The notes under the pieces were generated by a model that saw only the letters and a list, made by a program, of their open reading frames with translations, made no database searches and had not been told where the DNA came from. From Thalia democratica (lineage: Eukaryota): a stretch of 64,000 nucleotides of DNA. The DNA is taken from positions 41,664,001 through 41,728,000 of the forward strand of contig OZ241831.1 in assembly GCA_965202585.1 (NCBI GenBank). Reading direction: 5' to 3'. The translations under genes and the position numbers were made by a program. Every line of letters begins with the position of its first letter. Position 1 is the stretch's first letter. Of the stretch, positions 4,399 to 50,332 are shown piece after piece.

Positions 4399-5766
4399 TT
4401 TTGGTTTTAGTGATATGCAAAAAATATTATGGTTCTAGTTTTATTAACAATTTTAGGTTACTTTTATTCAGTTTGTTGTTTTAAAATGATTTTAGCTACA
4501 CATAGAATACCTAAAAAACTTATAAACATTTATTGGAATCAAAATTTCATTGACTAATATAGTTTAGTCTTAATAAACCATGTAATATTTAAACAGTTAG
4601 TAGGTTTAATTTACTGTTTTGTAGATAATAAATTATAGTACTAAATAACTTTTAAACCTAGCTTACAATACCTACAAACAGAATTCAAAAAGAAGAGAGC
4701 GGTTTGTTAAAAAAATAAAATTAAGAAATTATTTATATCTAAGTGTACTTCGACATAACTAGTTTTTTTTAAATTTTAGTTTAAATTAAGTAAATAATGA
4801 ATTGCCACGGTTTGGATTTGCAGCGTTCTTTTGCCTTTTCATGCAAGCTGTCTGTTGAAAATGGTATCTGTTCTTGAGTCTTAGTACGTACTTTACGAGA
4901 GTGCGTACCTGCTCTATGTATGTAGTGTAGCTGGTAAACTTTATATACAATGAGCAAGATTAATACAAGGATAAATAAGTGCATGTGATGAAAAAAAGAA
5001 TAGTTTGACTCTCTTGAGGTAGCCAAAATACAATATTTTCAACAGCAACATTTGAGCATCATACGCGTATACATAGTGTTACACTATTAAGAGAGGCACT
5101 TGTAGTGTGTCAGAAAGCGAGCTGACGACCTAGTCAGCTTAGGGATTTTACAATGTAAAGCTACAACGAATAAATCCCTAGACGTCTAAGCGGGTAGACG
5201 TCGTGAAGGCGGGTTGTGTGTTAGTGTGTTTGCAGGCATACAGATTATAGCTTGAGTCGACTTGGCCGTCGACTCGAGCTAGAGTCGAAAGACCGCAGCT
5301 AGGCGATCAAAGGTCGTATAGCAGACCTCATTGAATAAGCACGAAGGGAACGTAAAGCGAGAGCAAGGCACGTACCGTCCTAAGCAAGCCGTTAAGCATA
5401 AAAGCCGCACTCTCGCAAGGCAGTATATGAACGAGCTCTGACATGATTCAGCCCAGTTGAAAGTACGTTTGAGTGCAAAGATGAATTGATTAAGGAATGC
5501 ATTTCTAGAAGTGAAGCTTCGGACGGGCGACTGAAGCAGAGTAGGCGAGGTACTAGAAAATGCGAAGGTGTAGCACTCAAAATGTAACATGTAAAAAAGC
5601 GGCATAATCTCATGGTCGCTTTCAAAGTCAGAGGTCAGTTGAAGCGAAATGTTTTGGAAGGGAAGCAGGAGCTTCGAGAAAACATTTGTAAAACAGCGGG
5701 AGGTCTGTTTTTTCGAAAAGTTGTTGAAAATGAATTTTTGGGTTGTGAGAAGGGTGGAGAGAATAA

Positions 5767-5870
5767 AGAAAGAAAAGTTGGAAAAATTTTGAGCAAAAAA
5801 GCCGTCCGAATTCGCCCGCGGGCGAATTCGGACGGCTTTTTTGCTCAAAATTTTTCCAACTTTTCTTTCT
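5767..5870. repeat. Perfect 104-bp palindrome with no spacer
   Basis: 5767-5818 (agaaagaaaagttgg...gaattcgcccg) is the exact reverse complement of 5819-5870, checked base by base. Confidence 0.97.
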
Positions 5871-5873
5871 ATA

Positions 5874-6067
5874 ATTTTTCAAAGGTGTTCGACAAAAGTC
5901 GAACGCCTTTTTTTTACCCAAAATTTTTTTTGGCTACCTCAAGAGAGTCAGAGTTTTTTGCCTAGTACTATATATTTTTCAAAGGTGTTCGACGAAAGTC
6001 GGATGCCTTTTTTTTACCCAAAAATTTTTTAGGCTGCCTCAAGAGAGTCAGAGTTTTTTCCCTAGTA
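5874..6067 (+). repeat. Two 94-bp direct repeats (period 100), each with a 13-bp hairpin followed by a T-tract (also 27606-27799, 50071-50264)
   Basis: atttttcaaaggtgttcgac[a/g]aaagtcg...cctttttttt...cctcaagagagtcagagtttttt.cctagta at 5874-5967 and 5974-6067. Confidence 0.93.
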
Positions 6068-9000
6068 ATGATTATTTTATCAATTTCACTGATGTCTTAA
6101 ATTTTGAACGTTGCTGCCGAAAGGTTAGCACCATTATTTTTTATATATAATTTTGATAAAAAATGTTAGAGTTTTTAAAATTACAACTATCAATAGCCTT
6201 ATTAGAGAAATGTAGAAAATATTTTTTACTTTTGATACTTATAATAAATTAAGATTTAATTTATAAAGATATAATCAAAACAATGATAGTAAAAAGGCTT
6301 GTTTGTTATTTGAAATATGTAAGATAAAAATATTACAAATTAAACTTTATATTTCAGGTTAGAACTTTTATATTTCAAATTGAAAATAAGTTTTAATGTT
6401 CTTAACAAAATTACGCATTGAAATTTTCAACATTTTCACGTTTCTAAGACATGCTTTATTTTTTAATAAAGTTTTAAACTAATGGGAATTTACTTACAAA
6501 CGAGAACTATAAAAGTAAGCATGCCAAAAAAAAAAACTTAAGCACGTGTACATATATTACTTAACCTGATAAGATAATAAATCCAATTGTACAAACAAAA
6601 ACAAACTAAACTCGTATCTGTGCCAACGAACAACTATGTCAAAAAGAAAATTAAAAGTGTTGTTTTATAATTAGAATTTTTTTTTGTATCTGACACTTAA
6701 TGAAGCAAACTGTTTAATTCAACGTTGATACTCTTTTTAGTACTTGTGTGCAGTTTTCTATATAGTTTTCTATACAATAAACAAATTTTTAGGTAGCAGG
6801 CATTTTGATTAATTTTGTTAAACGTTTGTAATTCATTTAATTTGTTCTTAAAAATAAAAGAATATGGTTTAGTTTGTTAAATAAAACGACAAAAACCGAT
6901 AAAACATTTAGTGTAGTTGAGAAACAAGTAGCTTATGTATAAAAACGATTTATGTGATTCAATCATGTAATTTAGTTTAGTTAACATAAGGCATATTTAA
7001 GTATAGACAGCTATATGTAACTATACTGATTTTGTTTGAGTCAACTATCATAGACAAGTTCTCAATTAATGAAAAATAAAGATACTTCACATTTTTTTAT
7101 ACATGCGCAAGTACTTGGTAAAAACTTTAAATAACTAAACAAAAAGCTTGCGAAACATAGGCTACTCCCACAACTGATTTCTGAATACAATCTAGTTTCG
7201 TTTAGTTTTCTTTTATCGCTCGTTTTATTTATTTAATTATAAAGTTTTAAGTTTTAAACTTAAAACTTATCGGCTCGTTAACCATTGTAAAACCATGTGG
7301 TGTACGACTCGAAAACCGAAAAGTTCTTTCGAATACCAGGTCTTTAGAAGAAACTTTTTAATGCTTTTTTTGCGGTTCAACGAACAATAAAAAATTGAAA
7401 AGGGAAGGTTAAAAAAAAGCTACTAGACGAAGTGGTCTAACGTTTTCACGCGTTGTCAAACTCTTGTAATCAACATATTTTTCTCTATACTTAGCTAGAC
7501 GCTCAAAAATGTAACGGCGACTTTTGCGAGACTAAGTGTCTGTTTCCATTATATGATCATTAAAAACTTCACTTTCAGCTAAGTTTACTTATAGAATATG
7601 GTTTTATAAAAGCATGTCTTGGTAGTTAATTATTTTGATTTAAGTAAAGTACTTGACAAATACAGGTATTTCTCATAAAACTATTCGCAGATTTTTGACA
7701 ATTACGGACGACGCAAGTTGATTTTACGAGAAAAGCTATTGAAAACAGAAAAAAAGTCTAATAAAAGAGATGAGTACAAATTATATTGAAAATAAGAGGT
7801 ATACTCATTTAGACATTTTGCAATAGCGTTATGAACGCTTTTCAACAATCTATCTGGAGTATTTTAAAGTTATGTAATTTAACATAATCTAATGAACGTA
7901 AAGATAACTTATGAAAAATATAAAAATCAACAAACGTGCGAAGATTTAAAACTGTAAACTTTGAAAAACCGTCTTTTTTTACGATCAAAGTTAAACACAA
8001 TATTTTATTTAAACAAAGCGTCATGCGACTAAAATAAAGCAAATTTATAATTTAAACAAAAGAGTCGTTAATAATATAGCTTTGGTAGTTACAGCACAAC
8101 ACCTATGACAGAACTACTCTTATATATCTTATACTACTTAAACAACGATTACTTGTCGAATTTTTTCATGATATTAAGGTACTTCATAAAGAGAAACATA
8201 TTACAAAATAGAAGCAAATTGATTTAGTGACATTTAATTTTATACTCGTTTAATCAAAACTAACATTTAAACGGTTAAATATGTAGTTGCTATCTTGCAT
8301 AGTTGGTCATTTCATGCAGTTAGTTTTTGTATATGAACTGAAGAAAGACCTAAATAAAAATATCAGAAGCGTTATCTTTTACAAAGCTTGAGCTTTATTT
8401 AATACGCAAGTGAAAACTTCCAACAAGAAACAAAATCAAATACTAAAACTATTAAGAAAGGTTGATTTAGAAATACATTTATTTTAAGAAAACATCTGTT
8501 TAATGCTCATTCCGAAGTCAATACACTGCGAAGAACAGTCCTGGACAAAAAATTTATGTAACTGTGGCGTATTAGTTGATAACCGAAAGGTTTTTCGTAC
8601 ACCAGGTCCTTAGATCAAACTTTTATTGAGTGTTTCTATCGACGTTCAACAAACTGACTGTACATACGAACTAACTTCCAAGCATGTATAAAAATTTTGA
8701 TATATATATGGCAAGTTTCCTTCAAGTTGCGTAAACAAGTCGAACATTTGTGTAATATATTTATTAAACGGTAATAAAAACTATGCAAGCTGTGTTAGTA
8801 TAAGTGTCACTATATAATATTTCAAGAAAATTGCAGCTATACTCTGATAAATCACTTATTCGGGTAAAAATAGTTTTTTCTCAAAAACTCGATTTCATTT
8901 TATCTTTACAAGAATTCTGGACATTATGAAAAAGTTGCTTTTAAATAATGGTGATGCTTTAAAAAATATATATACTTAAGTATATTATCCAATAATCTAT

Positions 9001-15124: not shown

Positions 15125-15770
15125 GTCAAGGGACAGATATTTTACCACCAACCTAGATCAATGACAAGGATATCGCAAATGTGAAACACTTTGGATACCT
15201 TAGCTTCAGACTCCCACCCGTTGATCAAACTCATAGTTAGACACAGAAATAACTAGTCGCATAGGTAAGGCCTCAGGCACTTTCGCTTGTTTGTCTGCAA
15301 GAGTATGGGGTAACCAAAGTTAAGCATTCTTACAAAGTCTAACGTTTATTGTTCCTGTGTATGCAGTACTCTGCTATACGGTAGCGAAATAAGGATATTT
15401 ACTAGCGTCCTGGAGAAGAAAAAACAATACCTTTCATTAACAATGCCTTTGTCGCATCCTTAGAATTGCATGGAATCAAAAGATCACCAACGAGGAAGTG
15501 TTGAGACGTACTTGTGATACTACCATGTGGTTTACCCTCAGTCAGCGCAGGTTTCGCTGGGTCGTTCATGTTCTGAGGATGAGTGCTGAGCGAATCCCAA
15601 AGTTTGTCAATTGCACACGCTACAGAGGTCGTCCAACATTACGTTTTAACGACGTATGCAAGCGTGACCTAAAAAGCTGGAATATAAGAACTGGTGAATG
15701 GGAATCGTTTGCAAATGACCGTGCCAAATAAAGATCTACTGTTAACAAAAGTCTGAATGAAAGGAAAAAA
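15125..15770 (+). mobile_element. 5'-truncated, decayed RTE-clade LINE (C-terminal reverse-transcriptase region)
   Basis: Fragments LDTEITSRIGKASGTF..L..RVW, TK..VY..CV.STLLYGSE, FH..CL.RIL.I.W..KITNEEVLRR and RGRPTLRFNDVCKRDLK, interrupted by stops and frameshifts. Includes track ORF 15498-15731. Confidence 0.85.
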
Positions 15771-18800: not shown

Positions 18801-20882
18801 TCGAAGAATCGAAACGTAGATGCCTAATAAAGTTTTTCATACTGTAATGAAATCAATATTTGATTTTATTATTTTAAATAAATAAGTTAAAAAGGAGTTT
18901 TTTGTTTCGACGGCGTAAAACATTCATAATTCTTAGAAATAAGTTATTTTAAACCGAAAACAATAATGAGCTTTCTGAAAACAATTTTCCAAGTTTTTAA
19001 AACATCATTGTTTACTCGAAGAAGTTAGTTTCTTTCCAGTGCGTGTATATTGGTGTTTGTGTTTCAAATACGCGTTAGTTAGTTAAGTTTTTGTGCGTTT
19101 CGTACGCCGTCTTAAGTCACGATGATGATCAACGCAACATCAAGTTAAGTTCAAGCCAATGAAGTAAAATCTACATCGAAAAAAGTATACGTTTTCTAGT
19201 GAAGAATAAGTTACACATTGTCAAGCAACCAGAACACCTAGTCGTGTCTAAGAACATGAATCTAAACGAGTTCCTTGATCGAACAATTCATTGTCGAGAC
19301 CATAAGTATTTTTGCATACATTTTATTATAATAGACCATTTGTTTATTAACTAATACAGTTCTTTCTTGAGTTTTAAAATGCTACTTGACATTAATTCAT
19401 AGAGCGTTTCAATCATGACTTGGTAACAAGTTACTTTAAGTTTTGTAACTTTAGTATTGTAAGCTGCTTTTAAGTAAAGCAGTCAGTTTAGCTTAAGTAC
19501 TTAGAAACCATGTTTAAGACGATAAACATAATCAGTTTAATAAATATTGTTCTGTGGTTATAATACTTTACTATGTTTTCAATAATATTTAATTCAATCT
19601 AAAACGATGTAAAAAATGTTTATCTTTAAGAAGTAGCAATAATTGGGTTATAACTTAACAATACTAAATACAAAAAAAAAAATTGTTTAAAAAATAATGA
19701 AGATTAACAGTTGTACTCCAAAAGCAAAAAATAAAAAAAGGATCAAAAAAAATATATGTTTGTTAAAAATAAAATCTATTAAAAGGTATAGAAAATTTAT
19801 ATGTATAAATTTTTTTTGCCCTTATAACTATATTTTAACCACTAAAAATACACCTAAAATTGAGTTTTTATTCTTAATAGTTTAAGTTTACTAGTTGTAT
19901 AAAAGGTTTTTTAATTTGGTCATAATAGGACCCGTAATTAACCTGTTTTCAAGGGCAAACTCTTATTGTCTTGTTTTGTCGAAACCATGTTACAAGGTTT
20001 TATAAAAATTTCGTAATATTATCTTTGGCGGGCCGGATTTCACAATGTGCTTTTTTCACATTTTATATTGTAAAAACGTGTTGCAAATTTATCTAATTTT
20101 TTTTTCGTACTGATTGTTTAAGACGTTGTGGTTAGTTTTAACAAGTTACTGATTTTATTTTGCTGAACTATGATTTTTTTATTCTATTTGAAAATTACTT
20201 CTATAATGTCTTAAAATAAATTATAAAAGTTATTGCTAGTTGCTTATTTTACAGAACTAACTGCACGAAAACTTTTCTCTATAGTTATTTTATTTAATAA
20301 GTAATATTATATATATTAAAACCTTAGAAACCAATCATAGAAAAAAAATAAAAGGACTTCTTAAATGATAACAAGTGTTATGCAGAAATTTGAGACATGA
20401 TTAAATCAAAAACATAATTATTTAAACAAAAAAGTAAAATGGATTTTAAATAACACTTATCAACTACTAGTTTTTATGATTGTTGTTTGTCGCTTATTTT
20501 ATATATTTATCGTATTTTTTGTTTTTATTTTTATACGTTTGCTTATCTTAGTTAAATTACTAATCAATTTATCTATAATTATGTAATTATAAACTGGTAA
20601 TCTGTCTCTAATTGATTTTGCTTAACTATGCTAATTAGTATTAATTGAATATTTTCTAATTAAACCTCTAAATGTTTATTTACTCAAAATTTATCTTTAA
20701 AATTAGTTGCTAACAAAAGAAGTTGATAATTATTAGCTAAAATCGATTTTACTTGTTTGTTTATAAAAATATTTTTTTAAAGGAATCATGTCTCAAATTT
20801 CTAATTAACATATGTATTACAAAAAAGTTATATAGTAGCAAGTAAAAATAATTATGTTATGTTTATTTTATAATTTGTACGC

Positions 20883-21838
20883 TTAATTTTTTTCGGTCTC
20901 TAGTGACGTATTTCTCGATAAGCAGTTTTTTGAATTACACGCACAATCAAAATCACGAAAATACCCTTCTCCGTACCAAATGAAGAGTTGCTCACTAGCT
21001 CTGATAGCTTTTTTGCTGATGATAAAGTTCCTAGGAATTCCATTGATCAGAGCGTACTCTGTCCTGCAATTTAATTTATCTTCGCAATCGTGGTTAATGA
21101 ACCTGGTATGGTTGCCCATTGCGCCCGCGTCAATATCAAAATTCGTGCATGTGCTGAAATAGTAGTTGGTAGCCCCTTTATTCTCACGCCACCTTTTAGT
21201 CTTTTCTTCTTTTGAAATAAGCTCGCCTGTATACTCTCCTATTATTGAGTCTGAAAATCAACAAATAATAAGTTTAATATCCAAGCTAGTAGTTTAATTT
21301 AAGAATTATTTAGTCAAAATTTTCATTATAACAAAAAAAAGTTGTACATTGAAAAAAAAGTTAAACAATGAAACTTACTTGCTGGTATAGCATGCTTAGC
21401 GAACAGCCCACGGCCCATTTTACCACTAAGATTGTCCACATAAAAATGTTTTTCAGGATCGTCAAGGCAGTCATGATTGAACTTTTTTAAACTATCCAGT
21501 TCAATAAAAGAAGCTACATGTTTTATCTCATCCAAATAAGTATCGCTTCCAATCACGAGGTGGTTCGTCCAAACATGATGCTTCTCTGTATTGAAATGAT
21601 AGTAAGGATCAAAAACGTCGTCAGGCCCTTCCTTGAATGTCCTTTTAACTTCGAATTTTCCCTCCAAAGCAATTTTCTTCCATTTTTGCTTGCTTGACGA
21701 TCGTATTTTAATGCTGAGTGGTGCAAATTTTTTCAACGTATTCCTGATTGGAACACTTCTTATAACGGCCTTCCTTGCTGTCTGCTTTTTGTAGCTTTTT
21801 ATTCCTGATTGCTTATAAAAACTTGTTTTTACTGGCAT
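20883..21838 (-). CDS. SET-domain lysine methyltransferase with post-SET Zn motif, 275 aa, 2 coding exons: complement(join(20883..21250,21379..21838))
   Basis: Donor GCAA|GTAAGT at 21378 and acceptor TTTTCAG| at 21251 define a 128-bp phase-1 intron that joins the two track ORFs in frame (460+368=828 nt). Product reads ...MGRGLFAKHAIPANSIIGEYTGELI...NYYF...IDAGAMGNHTRFINHDC...AIRASEQLFIWYG...FDCACNSKNC, i.e. GxG, EYxGE, RFINHxC, catalytic Tyr and CxCx4C motifs. AATAAA lies ~16 nt after the stop (20862-20867). A probable 5'UTR intron spans 22141 (CAG|GTATGG) to 21870 (CTAAC...TTTATAG|). Confidence 0.92.
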
Positions 21839-26700: not shown

Positions 26701-26821
26701 GGATAAATAAGTGCATGTGATGAAAAAAAGAATAGTTTGACTCTCTTGAGGTAGCCAAAATACAATATTTTCAACAGCAACATTTGAGCATCATACGCGT
26801 ATACATAGTGTTACACTATTA

Positions 26822-27867
26822 AGAGAGGCACTTGTAGTGTGTCAGAAAGCGAGCTGACGACCTAGTCAGCTTAGGGATTTTACAATGTAAAGCTACAACG
26901 AATAAATCCCTAGACGTCTAAGCGGGTAGACGTCGTGAAGGCGGGTTGTGTGTTAGTGTGTTTGCAGGCATACAGATTATAGCTTGAGTCGACTTGGCCG
27001 TCGACTCGAGCTAGAGTCGAAAGACCGCAGCTAGGCGATCAAAGGTCGTATAGCAGACCTCATTGAATAAGCACGAAGGGAACGTAAAGCGAGAGCAAGG
27101 CACGTACCGTCCTAAGCAAGCCGTTAAGCATAAAAGCCGCACTCTCGCAAGGCAGTATATGAACGAGCTCTGACATGATTCAGCCCAGTTGAAAGTACGT
27201 TTGAGTGCAAAGATGAATTGATTAAGGAATGCATTTCTAGAAGTGAAGCTTCGGACGGGCGACTGAAGCAGAGTAGGCGAGGTACTAGAAAATGCGAAGG
27301 TGTAGCACTCAAAATGTAACATGTAAAAAAGCGGCATAATCTCATGGTCGCTTTCAAAGTCAGAGGTCAGTTGAAGCGAAATGTTTTGGAAGGGAAGCAG
27401 GAGCTTCGAGAAAACATTTGTAAAACAGCGGGAGGTCTGTTTTTTCGAAAAGTTGTTGAAAATGAATTTTTGGGTTGTGAGAAGGGTGGAGAGAATAAAG
27501 AAAGAAAAGTTGGAAAAATTTTGAGCAAAAAAGCCGTCCGAATTCGCCCGCGGGCGAATTCGGACGGCTTTTTTGCTCAAAATTTTTCCAACTTTTCTTT
27601 CTATAATTTTTCAAAGGTGTTCGACAAAAGTCGAACGCCTTTTTTTTACCCAAAATTTTTTTTGGCTACCTCAAGAGAGTCAGAGTTTTTTGCCTAGTAC
27701 TATATATTTTTCAAAGGTGTTCGACGAAAGTCGGATGCCTTTTTTTTACCCAAAAATTTTTTAGGCTGCCTCAAGAGAGTCAGAGTTTTTTCCCTAGTAA
27801 TGATTATTTTATCAATTTCACTGATGTCTTAAATTTTGAACGTTGCTGCCGAAAGGTTAGCACCATT
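26822..27867 (+). ncRNA. Candidate structured RNA element, copy 2
   Basis: Same sequence as 5090-6135 (offset 21732). Confidence 0.5.
27499..27602. repeat. Perfect 104-bp palindrome, copy 2
   Basis: Same sequence, offset 21732. Confidence 0.97.
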
Positions 27868-48500: not shown

Positions 48501-49286
48501 TATATTTTAAGAAATGTAAGCCTAGACCAGGGGTCGGCAGGCAGTTTGTGCTCGCAGGCCAAATTTCGAGTTTCAAAAATTTTAGTGGGCCGCAGTTTTG
48601 GTTTTAGTGATATGCAAAAAATATTATGGTTCTAGTTTTATTAACAATTTTAGGTTACTTTTATTCAGTTTGTTGTTTTAAAATGATTTTAGCTACACAT
48701 AGAATACCTAAAAAACTTATAAACATTTATTGGAATCAAAATTTCATTGACTAATATAGTTTAGTCTTAATAAACCATGTAATATTTAAACAGTTAGTAG
48801 GTTTAATTTACTGTTTTGTAGATAATAAATTATAGTACTAAATAACTTTTAAACCTAGCTTACAATACCTACAAACAGAATTCAAAAAGAAGAGAGCGGT
48901 TTGTTAAAAAAATAAAATTAAGAAATTATTTATATCTAAGTGTACTTCGACATAACTAGTTTTTTTTAAATTTTAGTTTAAATTAAGTAAATAATGAATT
49001 GCCACGGTTTGGATTTGCAGCGTTCTTTTGCCTTTTCATGCAAGCTGTCTGTTGAAAATGGTATCTGTTCTTGAGTCTTAGTACGTACTTTACGAGAGTG
49101 CGTACCTGCTCTATGTATGTAGTGTAGCTGGTAAACTTTATATACAATGAGCAAGATTAATACAAGGATAAATAAGTGCATGTGATGAAAAAAAGAATAG
49201 TTTGACTCTCTTGAGGTAGCCAAAATACAATATTTTCAACAGCAACATTTGAGCATCATACGCGTATACATAGTGTTACACTATTA

Positions 49287-50332
49287 AGAGAGGCACTTGT
49301 AGTGTGTCAGAAAGCGAGCTGACGACCTAGTCAGCTTAGGGATTTTACAATGTAAAGCTACAACGAATAAATCCCTAGACGTCTAAGCGGGTAGACGTCG
49401 TGAAGGCGGGTTGTGTGTTAGTGTGTTTGCAGGCATACAGATTATAGCTTGAGTCGACTTGGCCGTCGACTCGAGCTAGAGTCGAAAGACCGCAGCTAGG
49501 CGATCAAAGGTCGTATAGCAGACCTCATTGAATAAGCACGAAGGGAACGTAAAGCGAGAGCAAGGCACGTACCGTCCTAAGCAAGCCGTTAAGCATAAAA
49601 GCCGCACTCTCGCAAGGCAGTATATGAACGAGCTCTGACATGATTCAGCCCAGTTGAAAGTACGTTTGAGTGCAAAGATGAATTGATTAAGGAATGCATT
49701 TCTAGAAGTGAAGCTTCGGACGGGCGACTGAAGCAGAGTAGGCGAGGTACTAGAAAATGCGAAGGTGTAGCACTCAAAATGTAACATGTAAAAAAGCGGC
49801 ATAATCTCATGGTCGCTTTCAAAGTCAGAGGTCAGTTGAAGCGAAATGTTTTGGAAGGGAAGCAGGAGCTTCGAGAAAACATTTGTAAAACAGCGGGAGG
49901 TCTGTTTTTTCGAAAAGTTGTTGAAAATGAATTTTTGGGTTGTGAGAAGGGTGGAGAGAATAAAGAAAGAAAAGTTGGAAAAATTTTGAGCAAAAAAGCC
50001 GTCCGAATTCGCCCGCGGGCGAATTCGGACGGCTTTTTTGCTCAAAATTTTTCCAACTTTTCTTTCTATAATTTTTCAAAGGTGTTCGACAAAAGTCGAA
50101 CGCCTTTTTTTTACCCAAAATTTTTTTTGGCTACCTCAAGAGAGTCAGAGTTTTTTGCCTAGTACTATATATTTTTCAAAGGTGTTCGACGAAAGTCGGA
50201 TGCCTTTTTTTTACCCAAAAATTTTTTAGGCTGCCTCAAGAGAGTCAGAGTTTTTTCCCTAGTAATGATTATTTTATCAATTTCACTGATGTCTTAAATT
50301 TTGAACGTTGCTGCCGAAAGGTTAGCACCATT
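49287..50332 (+). ncRNA. Candidate structured RNA element, copy 3
   Basis: Same sequence as 5090-6135 (offset 44197). Confidence 0.5.
49964..50067. repeat. Perfect 104-bp palindrome, copy 3
   Basis: Same sequence, offset 44197. Confidence 0.97.

Follow-up and report, generated by a model that had tools for sequence, protein, structure and literature searches.

A 64,000-nt stretch of the Thalia democratica genome (GCA_965202585.1, contig OZ241831.1, positions 41,664,001 to 41,728,000 of the forward strand; hereafter the window) carries a conserved non-coding element of about 0.7 kb at 5003-5720. The element shows no coding signal, is low in copy number and keeps blocks of complementary sequence in three deep lineages; it is real, conserved, and outside every described family tested. 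We favour, tentatively, the reading that it may be a lineage-restricted non-coding RNA (ncRNA) gene of pelagic tunicates, encoded on the + strand. All coordinates are window positions, and core, island and element refer to the copy in the first unit of a tandem array unless stated otherwise.

A first-pass annotation, made from the letters alone, had singled out a GC-rich segment at 5090-5766 as a large structured RNA of about 680 nt. The enrichment is genuine: the segment has 45.5% GC against about 25% in its flanks, in an AT-rich window (about 26% GC) nearly devoid of long open reading frames (ORFs). Its + strand is 60.6% purine and its observed/expected (o/e) CpG ratio is 1.14. The real unit is wider than was drawn, with a GC-rich island spanning about 4800-6080 in the first unit (one such island per unit) and a conserved core running from 5003 to 5720. 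CpG o/e ranges from 1.14 to 1.97 across the island and from 0.6 to 1.0 in the flanks.

Conservation of the element and absence of coding signal

The bait for homologues was a chance open frame of 189-199 codons on the - strand, 5279-5878, which is the pyrimidine-rich strand. A word-indexed protein search with its translation gave no match, and exact look-ups of the window ORFs returned no record. An exhaustive HMMER search with the same translation yielded two metagenome 'proteins' (E 5.6e-18 and 1.2e-9), and a profile built from these two recovered a third sequence cluster. The homologous contigs, seven in number, all come from Tara Oceans or related ENA marine metagenome assemblies and are of low coverage. 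They form lineage A (L006, L009 and L010) and lineage B (L007, L008, L011 and L012), which together with the window sequence make up the three deep lineages compared. One of them, L010, matches its own reverse complement at 100% identity over 3420 nt. Its assembly has folded back at a natural palindrome, so that the second arm holds no independent information, and one arm only was used. The core and the features at its 5' side are as follows.

5003..5720, + strand: conserved non-coding core of about 718 nt, candidate ncRNA, with homology to the 7 contigs, clustered variable sites and no codon periodicity
4882..4912, + strand: upstream block CTTAGTACGTACTTTACGAGAGTGCGTACCT, common to lineage B (homology of L007 reaches 4877) and absent upstream in L010 and L006; a possible distal promoter element
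4969..4998, + strand: A/T-rich, TATA-like segment GGATAAATAAG...CATGTGATG, about 30-37 nt before the core and partly alignable in all three lineages; putative promoter
5006..5028, + strand: 5' block TGACTCTCTTGAGGTAGCCAAAA, where conservation starts in all lineages; left arm of a 23-30 nt inverted repeat

Homology to the window, as determined by blastn, is confined to 4976-5868 (from 4877 in lineage B), and the flanks are AT-rich and unalignable. Over the element the contigs are 71-74% identical to the window, and lineages A and B are 77-80% identical to each other. In an alignment of the three deep lineages, conservation is fairly uniform over 5003-5720, where invariant columns make up 62-86% of each 40-nt window, and lower after 5720, at 45-62%. 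Variable sites fall into clusters (221 runs where 262 are expected; p=0.0002), and there are 8 invariant runs of at least 12 nt where 3.4 are expected (p=0.005). Since substitutions cluster in this way, the pattern indicates constraint rather than neutral decay. The tandem unit also contains a SET-domain methyltransferase gene, described below, and contigs with this gene, taken from similar Tara and ENA samples, share 69-71% identity with the window; the island and the SET gene region (exons and intron) thus diverge at about the same slow rate. Within lineage A, L006 and L009 share an identical central core of about 224 nt (window ~5265-5490) and differ by about 18%, indels counted, in the 3' part (5490-5865). 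This reflects either strong local constraint or chimeric metagenome assembly.

Two further observations concern the conserved 5' region. The sequence TGAGGTAG at 5015-5022, inside the invariant 5' block, coincides with let-7 over the first 8 nt and no further, probably by chance. A perfect 10-bp palindrome, ATACGCGTAT, lies at 5060-5069 in the best-conserved, unstructured 5' block and could be a binding site for a dimeric protein; here GAGCATCATACGCGTATAC is invariant in the window, L006 and L007, and the low-coverage L012 has one A-for-G difference.

The element is non-coding. In the bait frame, differences fall evenly over the three codon positions (50/47/46 against L006 and 47/49/47 against L007), and the alignment requires indels of 1, 5, 7 and 9 nt. 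No 3-nt periodicity appears in any 120-nt sliding window (best p 0.08), the L006 'ORF' contains two in-frame TGA codons, and lineage B keeps to this frame for 58 codons only. The codon-position and stop-codon tests refute the reading of the - strand frame as a protein-coding exon, to which we assign almost no probability. The frame is longer than in 99.85% of dinucleotide shuffles (p=0.0015) and its translation does match ORFs called on metagenome contigs, but the length follows from the purine-poor composition of the - strand and the matching 'ORFs' depend on TGA being read as Trp. Moreover, GC content at third codon positions is not depressed, unlike in the SET exons, and the relatives have neither Pfam domains nor names. 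On these AT-rich eukaryotic contigs (L006:22-513, P0013-P0018) TGA was taken for Trp in gene calling, which left spurious 'proteins' in public collections; they are not genes but can serve as bait in the search for non-coding homologues.

Structure of the candidate RNA

All the hairpins and helices named in the first-pass annotation are present in the window sequence.

5120-5126/5133-5139, + strand: hairpin H1, 7 bp
5140-5148/5172-5180, + strand: hairpin H2, 9 bp
5181-5188/5195-5202, + strand: hairpin H3, 8 bp
5249-5261/5268-5280, + strand: hairpin H4, 13 bp with one G.U
5284-5293, + strand: GTC-GAAA-GAC mini-hairpin
5120..5293, + strand: cluster of H1-H4 and the GAAA mini-hairpin, source of the folding signal; only H4 (5249-5280) is conserved
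5648-5688, + strand: nested stem
5468-5476/5573-5581, + strand: helix of TTTGAGTGC with GCACTCAAA
5323-5331/5701-5709, + strand: helix of GCAGACCTC with GAGGTCTGT

Compared with dinucleotide shuffles, the whole segment 5090-5766 folds better than chance (z -4.1 on the + strand and -4.2 on the - strand), and so does 5090-5300 with its four hairpins (z -6.1 and -5.0). The remainder, 5300-5766, does not exceed shuffles on the + strand (z -0.24) and is weak on the - strand (-1.7), so that its long-range helices are not above chance in a single sequence. The single-sequence folding signal therefore stems from the local hairpin cluster at 5090-5300.

Most of this cluster is not shared by the homologues. 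H3 is deleted in lineage A, H1 is swapped for unrelated short palindromes, H2 carries uncompensated mismatches in both lineages and the GAAA mini-hairpin is down to 2 bp. The GCAGACCTC/GAGGTCTGT and AAATGTTTT/AAAACATTT helices are not conserved either. H4 is conserved, with changes that yield G.U on the + strand, as is the TTTGAGTGC/GCACTCAAA helix. Of the fold listed in the first-pass annotation, then, H4 and TTTGAGTGC/GCACTCAAA hold up across lineages, and H1-H3 and the two other helices do not. The alignment brought out a further set of helices:

5357-5369/5404-5416, + strand: 11-bp helix with the only compensatory change found (A-U to U-A, lineage A)
5463..5588, + strand: central domain closed by a conserved 14-bp helix, 5463-5476/5573-5588, which extends TTTGAGTGC/GCACTCAAA
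5495-5504/5558-5563, + strand: conserved helix inside the central domain, longer in lineages A and B
5596..5622, + strand: conserved hairpin AAAGCGGC/GUCGCUUU, 98% of cells paired
5672-5681/5709-5718, + strand: 3'-terminal stem UUCGAGAAAA/UUUUUUCGAA, which encloses a small CAG..CUG hairpin and holds the invariant TGTTTTTT run

In the closing helix 5463/5588, 12 of the 13 counted pairs are invariant and 100% of cells are paired. A covariance model of 5350-5628, realigned to all copies, gave 98.2% of cells paired. The RNAalifold consensus contains 115 pairs at -81.7 kcal on the + strand and 81 pairs at -59.5 kcal on the - strand. By column shuffling, z over 5262-5822 was -5.7 (+) and -4.2 (-), and the + value was the lower in all five of the sub-windows. 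The first-pass annotation had also remarked that stem irregularities are G.U on the + strand. This is mildly supported: helices predicted on both strands, with stacked neighbours, hold 29 G.U cells against 8 A.C cells on the + strand in the three lineages, the cells not being independent. Overall, support for a structure is moderate.

If the element is an RNA gene, transcription would begin at the invariant ACTCTCTTGAGGTAGC block or slightly ahead of it, with the TATA-like segment upstream, and the RNA would end at the conserved terminal stem with its run of U6-7 (5672-5718). Conservation falls directly after this stem and its U-run, and the stem may accordingly mark the 3' end or act as a terminator. 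The 5' third would form lineage-variable hairpins, and the central part (~5250-5720) would fold into the nearly invariant helices H4, 5357/5416, 5463/5588, 5495/5563, 5596/5622 and 5672/5718. Such an RNA could presumably serve as a scaffold or guide in a ribonucleoprotein (RNP); the data suggest no specific partner. Transcription, strand, ends and function are inferences of this reading.

A number of observations weigh against an RNA gene. The covariation term in RNAalifold is close to zero (-0.15 on the + strand and +0.16 on the - strand). In the covariation count, 40 of the 48 pairs are invariant and one is compensatory; shuffles reach the observed values, there are about three deep lineages, and the result is not significant. 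The column-shuffle null does not preserve dinucleotides, and in the 5' third its z is only -1.9 (+) and -1.5 (-), with no conserved fold there. The structure conservation index is 0.65 (+) and 0.67 (-), and single-sequence z values of -0.7 to -2.8 are borderline and show no clear strand preference. Internal T4-T5 runs argue against RNA polymerase III, and no conserved polyadenylation signal was found. As for constraint, a comparison of L006 with L010 was discarded as a test, as their identity runs about 390 nt past the island and gives no island-specific signal, and as L010 is a fold-back artefact; the variants within lineage B show no excess conservation of the island, with too few differences to be informative. 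Lastly, the metagenome copies may be orthologues or old paralogues.

Two features adjoin the core on its 3' side:

5757..5880, no strand assigned: spacer-less palindrome with 62-nt arms, 94% complementary, centre 5818/5819; the less-conserved tail of the element forms its left arm
5874..6073, + strand: pair of 100-nt direct repeats; each contains a GC hairpin followed by T8 (5881-5917 and 5981-6017) and the 5' block in inverted copy (5928-5957 and 6028-6057)

The inverted copies account for the 23-30 nt inverted repeat, in which 4999-5028 pairs with 5928-5957 and with 6028-6057. In lineage A the palindrome is present with changed arms (107 nt at 88% with a 12-nt deletion in L006; 162 nt at 96% in L009), so that the arms vary between the window and lineage A and stay complementary within each. 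The first ~18 nt after the palindrome in L006 resemble the start of the window direct repeat. Lineage B, represented by 4 independent contigs, has no palindrome: homology ends 8 nt before the palindrome centre and gives way to unrelated AT-rich DNA, and no inverted copy of the 5' block was found within the 536 nt of its downstream flank. Since one lineage lacks it, the palindrome is accessory to the element, together with the terminator-like repeats. Both may be the remnant of an inverted, largely deleted second copy or, for an RNA gene, back-up terminators.

Known families and alternative explanations

No described RNA family was recognised. With Rfam 15 in gathering mode, which covers rRNA, RNase P/MRP, SRP, 7SK, snRNAs, group I/II introns, hammerhead and HDV ribozymes and lncRNA domains, there were 0 matches in the whole 64-kb window. 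In E-value mode there was no match in 5090-5700 or in the cores of L006, L007 and L009. This permissive setting returned only sub-threshold, miRNA-like hairpin matches on the palindrome, on both strands (MIR821, 76 bits against a gathering threshold of 249). The 124-nt palindrome thus scores as a generic miRNA-type hairpin, as hpRNA or miRNA-like precursors do; unlike these, it is far below threshold, matches on both strands and is absent in lineage B, and the similarity concerns the tail and not the core. Searches for tRNA and tmRNA found none, and blastn against plasmid and phage collections gave no match. Exact-pattern scans of JGI metagenomes and metatranscriptomes (the inverted-repeat 23-mer and a conserved 19-mer) were negative, four patterns in IMG/VR gave one chance 18-mer without extended similarity, and a two-block helix pattern was not found in GTDB genomes. 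A bacterial or viral origin is therefore unsupported by the IMG/VR and GTDB searches.

Telomerase RNA was considered and rejected. The size and conservation of the element would fit a fast-evolving RNP RNA, and the invariant GCTTAGGGATTTTA holds one telomere-repeat unit; a survey of tunicate ncRNAs could not identify the telomerase RNA (PMC5006418). However, the element lacks both the permuted (TTAGGG)n template and the conserved H/ACA 3' end of animal telomerase RNA. A template would span some 1.3 telomere repeats or more; none of at least 7 nt for (TTAGGG)n or four other repeat types was found on either strand, apart from chance TTAGGC 7-mers. The single TTAGGG, at 5139-5144, has non-repeat flanks and is buried in hairpin 2. 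An ACA at ~5693 is lost in lineage B, and there is no snoRNA-type Rfam match in the core. Since there is no template, identity with telomerase RNA is excluded for a TTAGGG telomere. The closer parallel is with lineage-specific RNP scaffold RNAs (yeast-size telomerase RNAs, 7SK, roX, hsr-omega), which like the element are hundreds of nt long, non-coding and low in copy number. The element resembles them in its conserved blocks between variable patches, its nearly invariant complementary segments and its terminal stem with a U-run. It differs from them in having no motif of a named family, no Rfam match in three lineages and no significant covariation, and in being known here from sequence alone.

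Could the conservation be that of DNA? A promoter, enhancer, CpG-island-like module, insulator, or replication or amplification element of the 22-kb unit, in which hairpins and palindrome act as DNA or are by-products, is a possible but doubtful alternative. It would account for the folding excess on both strands, for stems that are nearly perfect DNA palindromes (with the 10-bp ATACGCGTAT in the best-conserved 5' block), for the CpG o/e ratio of the island, for the spacer-less palindrome at the element's end, and for co-amplification with SET in every unit. On the other hand, some 720 contiguous nt conserved at the level of SET, with sharp ends and unalignable flanks, would be unusual for regulatory DNA. 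In addition, the ~60% purine asymmetry and the bias of G.U over A.C point to a strand-specific product, and the contigs of the relatives, those with the SET gene included, are too short to show linkage to SET. Rather less probable is a long untranslated region (5' or 3') or a non-coding exon of a spliced mRNA or long ncRNA with its other exons outside the island, which we consider quite improbable. The enrichment in GC and purine is exon-like for an AT-rich genome, and lineages A and B have a consensus-like donor, G/GTAAGT, near 5742. The window sequence (GGGTTGTGAG) lacks this donor, there is no conserved ORF next to the island on either strand, the flanks are unalignable, and the other boundary shows no acceptor or donor.

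The first-pass annotation had offered, besides a novel ncRNA, the RNA of a non-autonomous mobile element and a relic of ribosomal DNA (rDNA) spacer. A relic or domesticated mobile element (solo long terminal repeat, LTR; foldback or terminal inverted repeat, TIR, element; or Helitron-like), with ends near 5003 and the palindrome centre, seems improbable. A second inverted, mostly deleted copy would explain the palindrome and the inverted 5' blocks. Homology boundaries are sharp, with unrelated flanks in three lineages, the palindrome centre coincides with the end of lineage B homology, the lineage B unit starts with TG and ends with CA, and a 9-bp direct repeat, TTAAATTTT, flanks 4778-6096. 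Foldback and TIR elements and solo LTRs share such sharp ends, a 23-30 nt inverted repeat (here 4999-5028 with 5928-5957 and 6028-6057), an end palindrome and TG...CA. They differ from the element, however, which has one copy per unit, no target-site duplication (TSD) above chance, terminal repeats that are not found in all lineages, and a pattern of constraint. Profile search found the single copy per unit, and only three sequence clusters, all on low-coverage contigs, occur among ~15 billion predicted proteins. The 9-bp repeat is at chance for AT-rich DNA (~2 expected, an estimate) and not adjacent to the inverted repeats. The lineage B TG..CA unit has no TSD around it, its flanks being unmatched (AATGT vs ATATT), and window candidates for LTR ends have only 4-bp chance repeats. 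An inverted repeat, as in TIR or foldback elements, is present in the window, but lineage B has the left block only and lacks the right one along with the palindrome; lineage A contigs end shortly after the palindrome. Helitron ends (5' TC, 3' CTRR after a hairpin) were not found, the conserved start being (T)GACTCTC or AAACTCTC and the conserved end CTGTTTTTT, and CTAG occurs only inside the window-specific direct repeats. No ribozyme, reverse transcriptase, transposase or feature resembling a primer-binding site was seen, and a hammerhead motif of the retrozyme or Penelope type had no match at either the gathering or the E-value threshold. Clustered conservation, finally, speaks for constraint and not for neutral decay. 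The mobile-element reading is thus weak. Weaker still is a relic of rDNA spacer (external transcribed or intergenic), which we regard as very improbable: the island is rich in GC and hairpins, with repeated terminator-like modules and GTCGAC motifs in a tandem unit, but the 64-kb window has no rRNA or other Rfam family and the unit carries instead a SET gene and a candidate LINE fragment. Of the three initial readings the novel ncRNA survives best, being non-Rfam, non-coding, conserved in at least three lineages and low in copy number, and the fold as first listed holds up only in part.

Genomic setting and significance

The window is a tandem array of three ~22-kb units, which start at 1, 22466 and 44198 (unit lengths 22,465 and 21,732 nt). 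Unit 1 is 99.97% identical to unit 3 and, leaving aside an indel of ~740 bp (unit 1, 2238-2978), 99.8% identical to unit 2. This pattern suggests a 44-kb higher-order repeat or a very recent amplification. The three copies of the element are identical over 1151 nt; as evidence of constraint this is uninformative, the whole units being 99.8-99.97% identical. A profile HMM scan of the window found one copy of the element per 22-kb unit and none elsewhere, which, together with the few low-coverage contigs, suggests a low-copy element rather than a repeat family. The further copies and the neighbouring gene are:

26733..27554, + strand: second copy of the element, 100% identical, in the next 22-kb unit
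49198..50019, + strand: third copy of the element, 100% identical
20883-21838, - strand: SET-domain gene with two exons; homologues of 45-93% identity on Tara Oceans and ENA contigs, plus ~1-kb JGI contigs with PF00856

The SET methyltransferase gene is 4.9 kb from the island, which lies upstream of it in divergent orientation; both are co-amplified in every unit. Non-coding DNA upstream of the SET gene is partly alignable with contigs L004 and L005. Just past the 3' end of this gene there is an inverted repeat (20371-20468 / 20718-20815; 98 nt, 80% complementary, arms 249 nt apart), which recurs in the next unit. An ORF at 15498-15731 on the + strand is, by eye, a candidate C-terminal tail of a LINE reverse transcriptase (motifs RRFRWVVHVLRM ... 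GRPTLRFNDVCKRDL); if this identity is correct, each unit contains a retrotransposon fragment.

Little is known of tunicate ncRNAs other than miRNAs and housekeeping RNAs, and homology searches have missed fast-evolving examples, telomerase RNA among them (PMC5006418). Used as bait, spurious ORFs on marine metagenome contigs are a workable means of finding homologues of non-coding eukaryotic DNA. A segment of ~720 nt that is conserved like the neighbouring gene region, has no match among known families and is co-amplified with a chromatin-modifier gene is a testable candidate for a new lineage-specific RNA or regulatory element. Without transcription, too, it would be a conserved non-coding element of unusual length with a boundary palindrome. 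A bolder possibility, which we hold only loosely, is that it represents an undescribed family of ~0.7-kb structured RNAs in pelagic tunicates, an RNP scaffold without Rfam counterpart that is kept in a 22-kb cassette with a minimal SET methyltransferase; RNA and enzyme might then cooperate, for example in RNA-guided or RNA-scaffolded chromatin modification.

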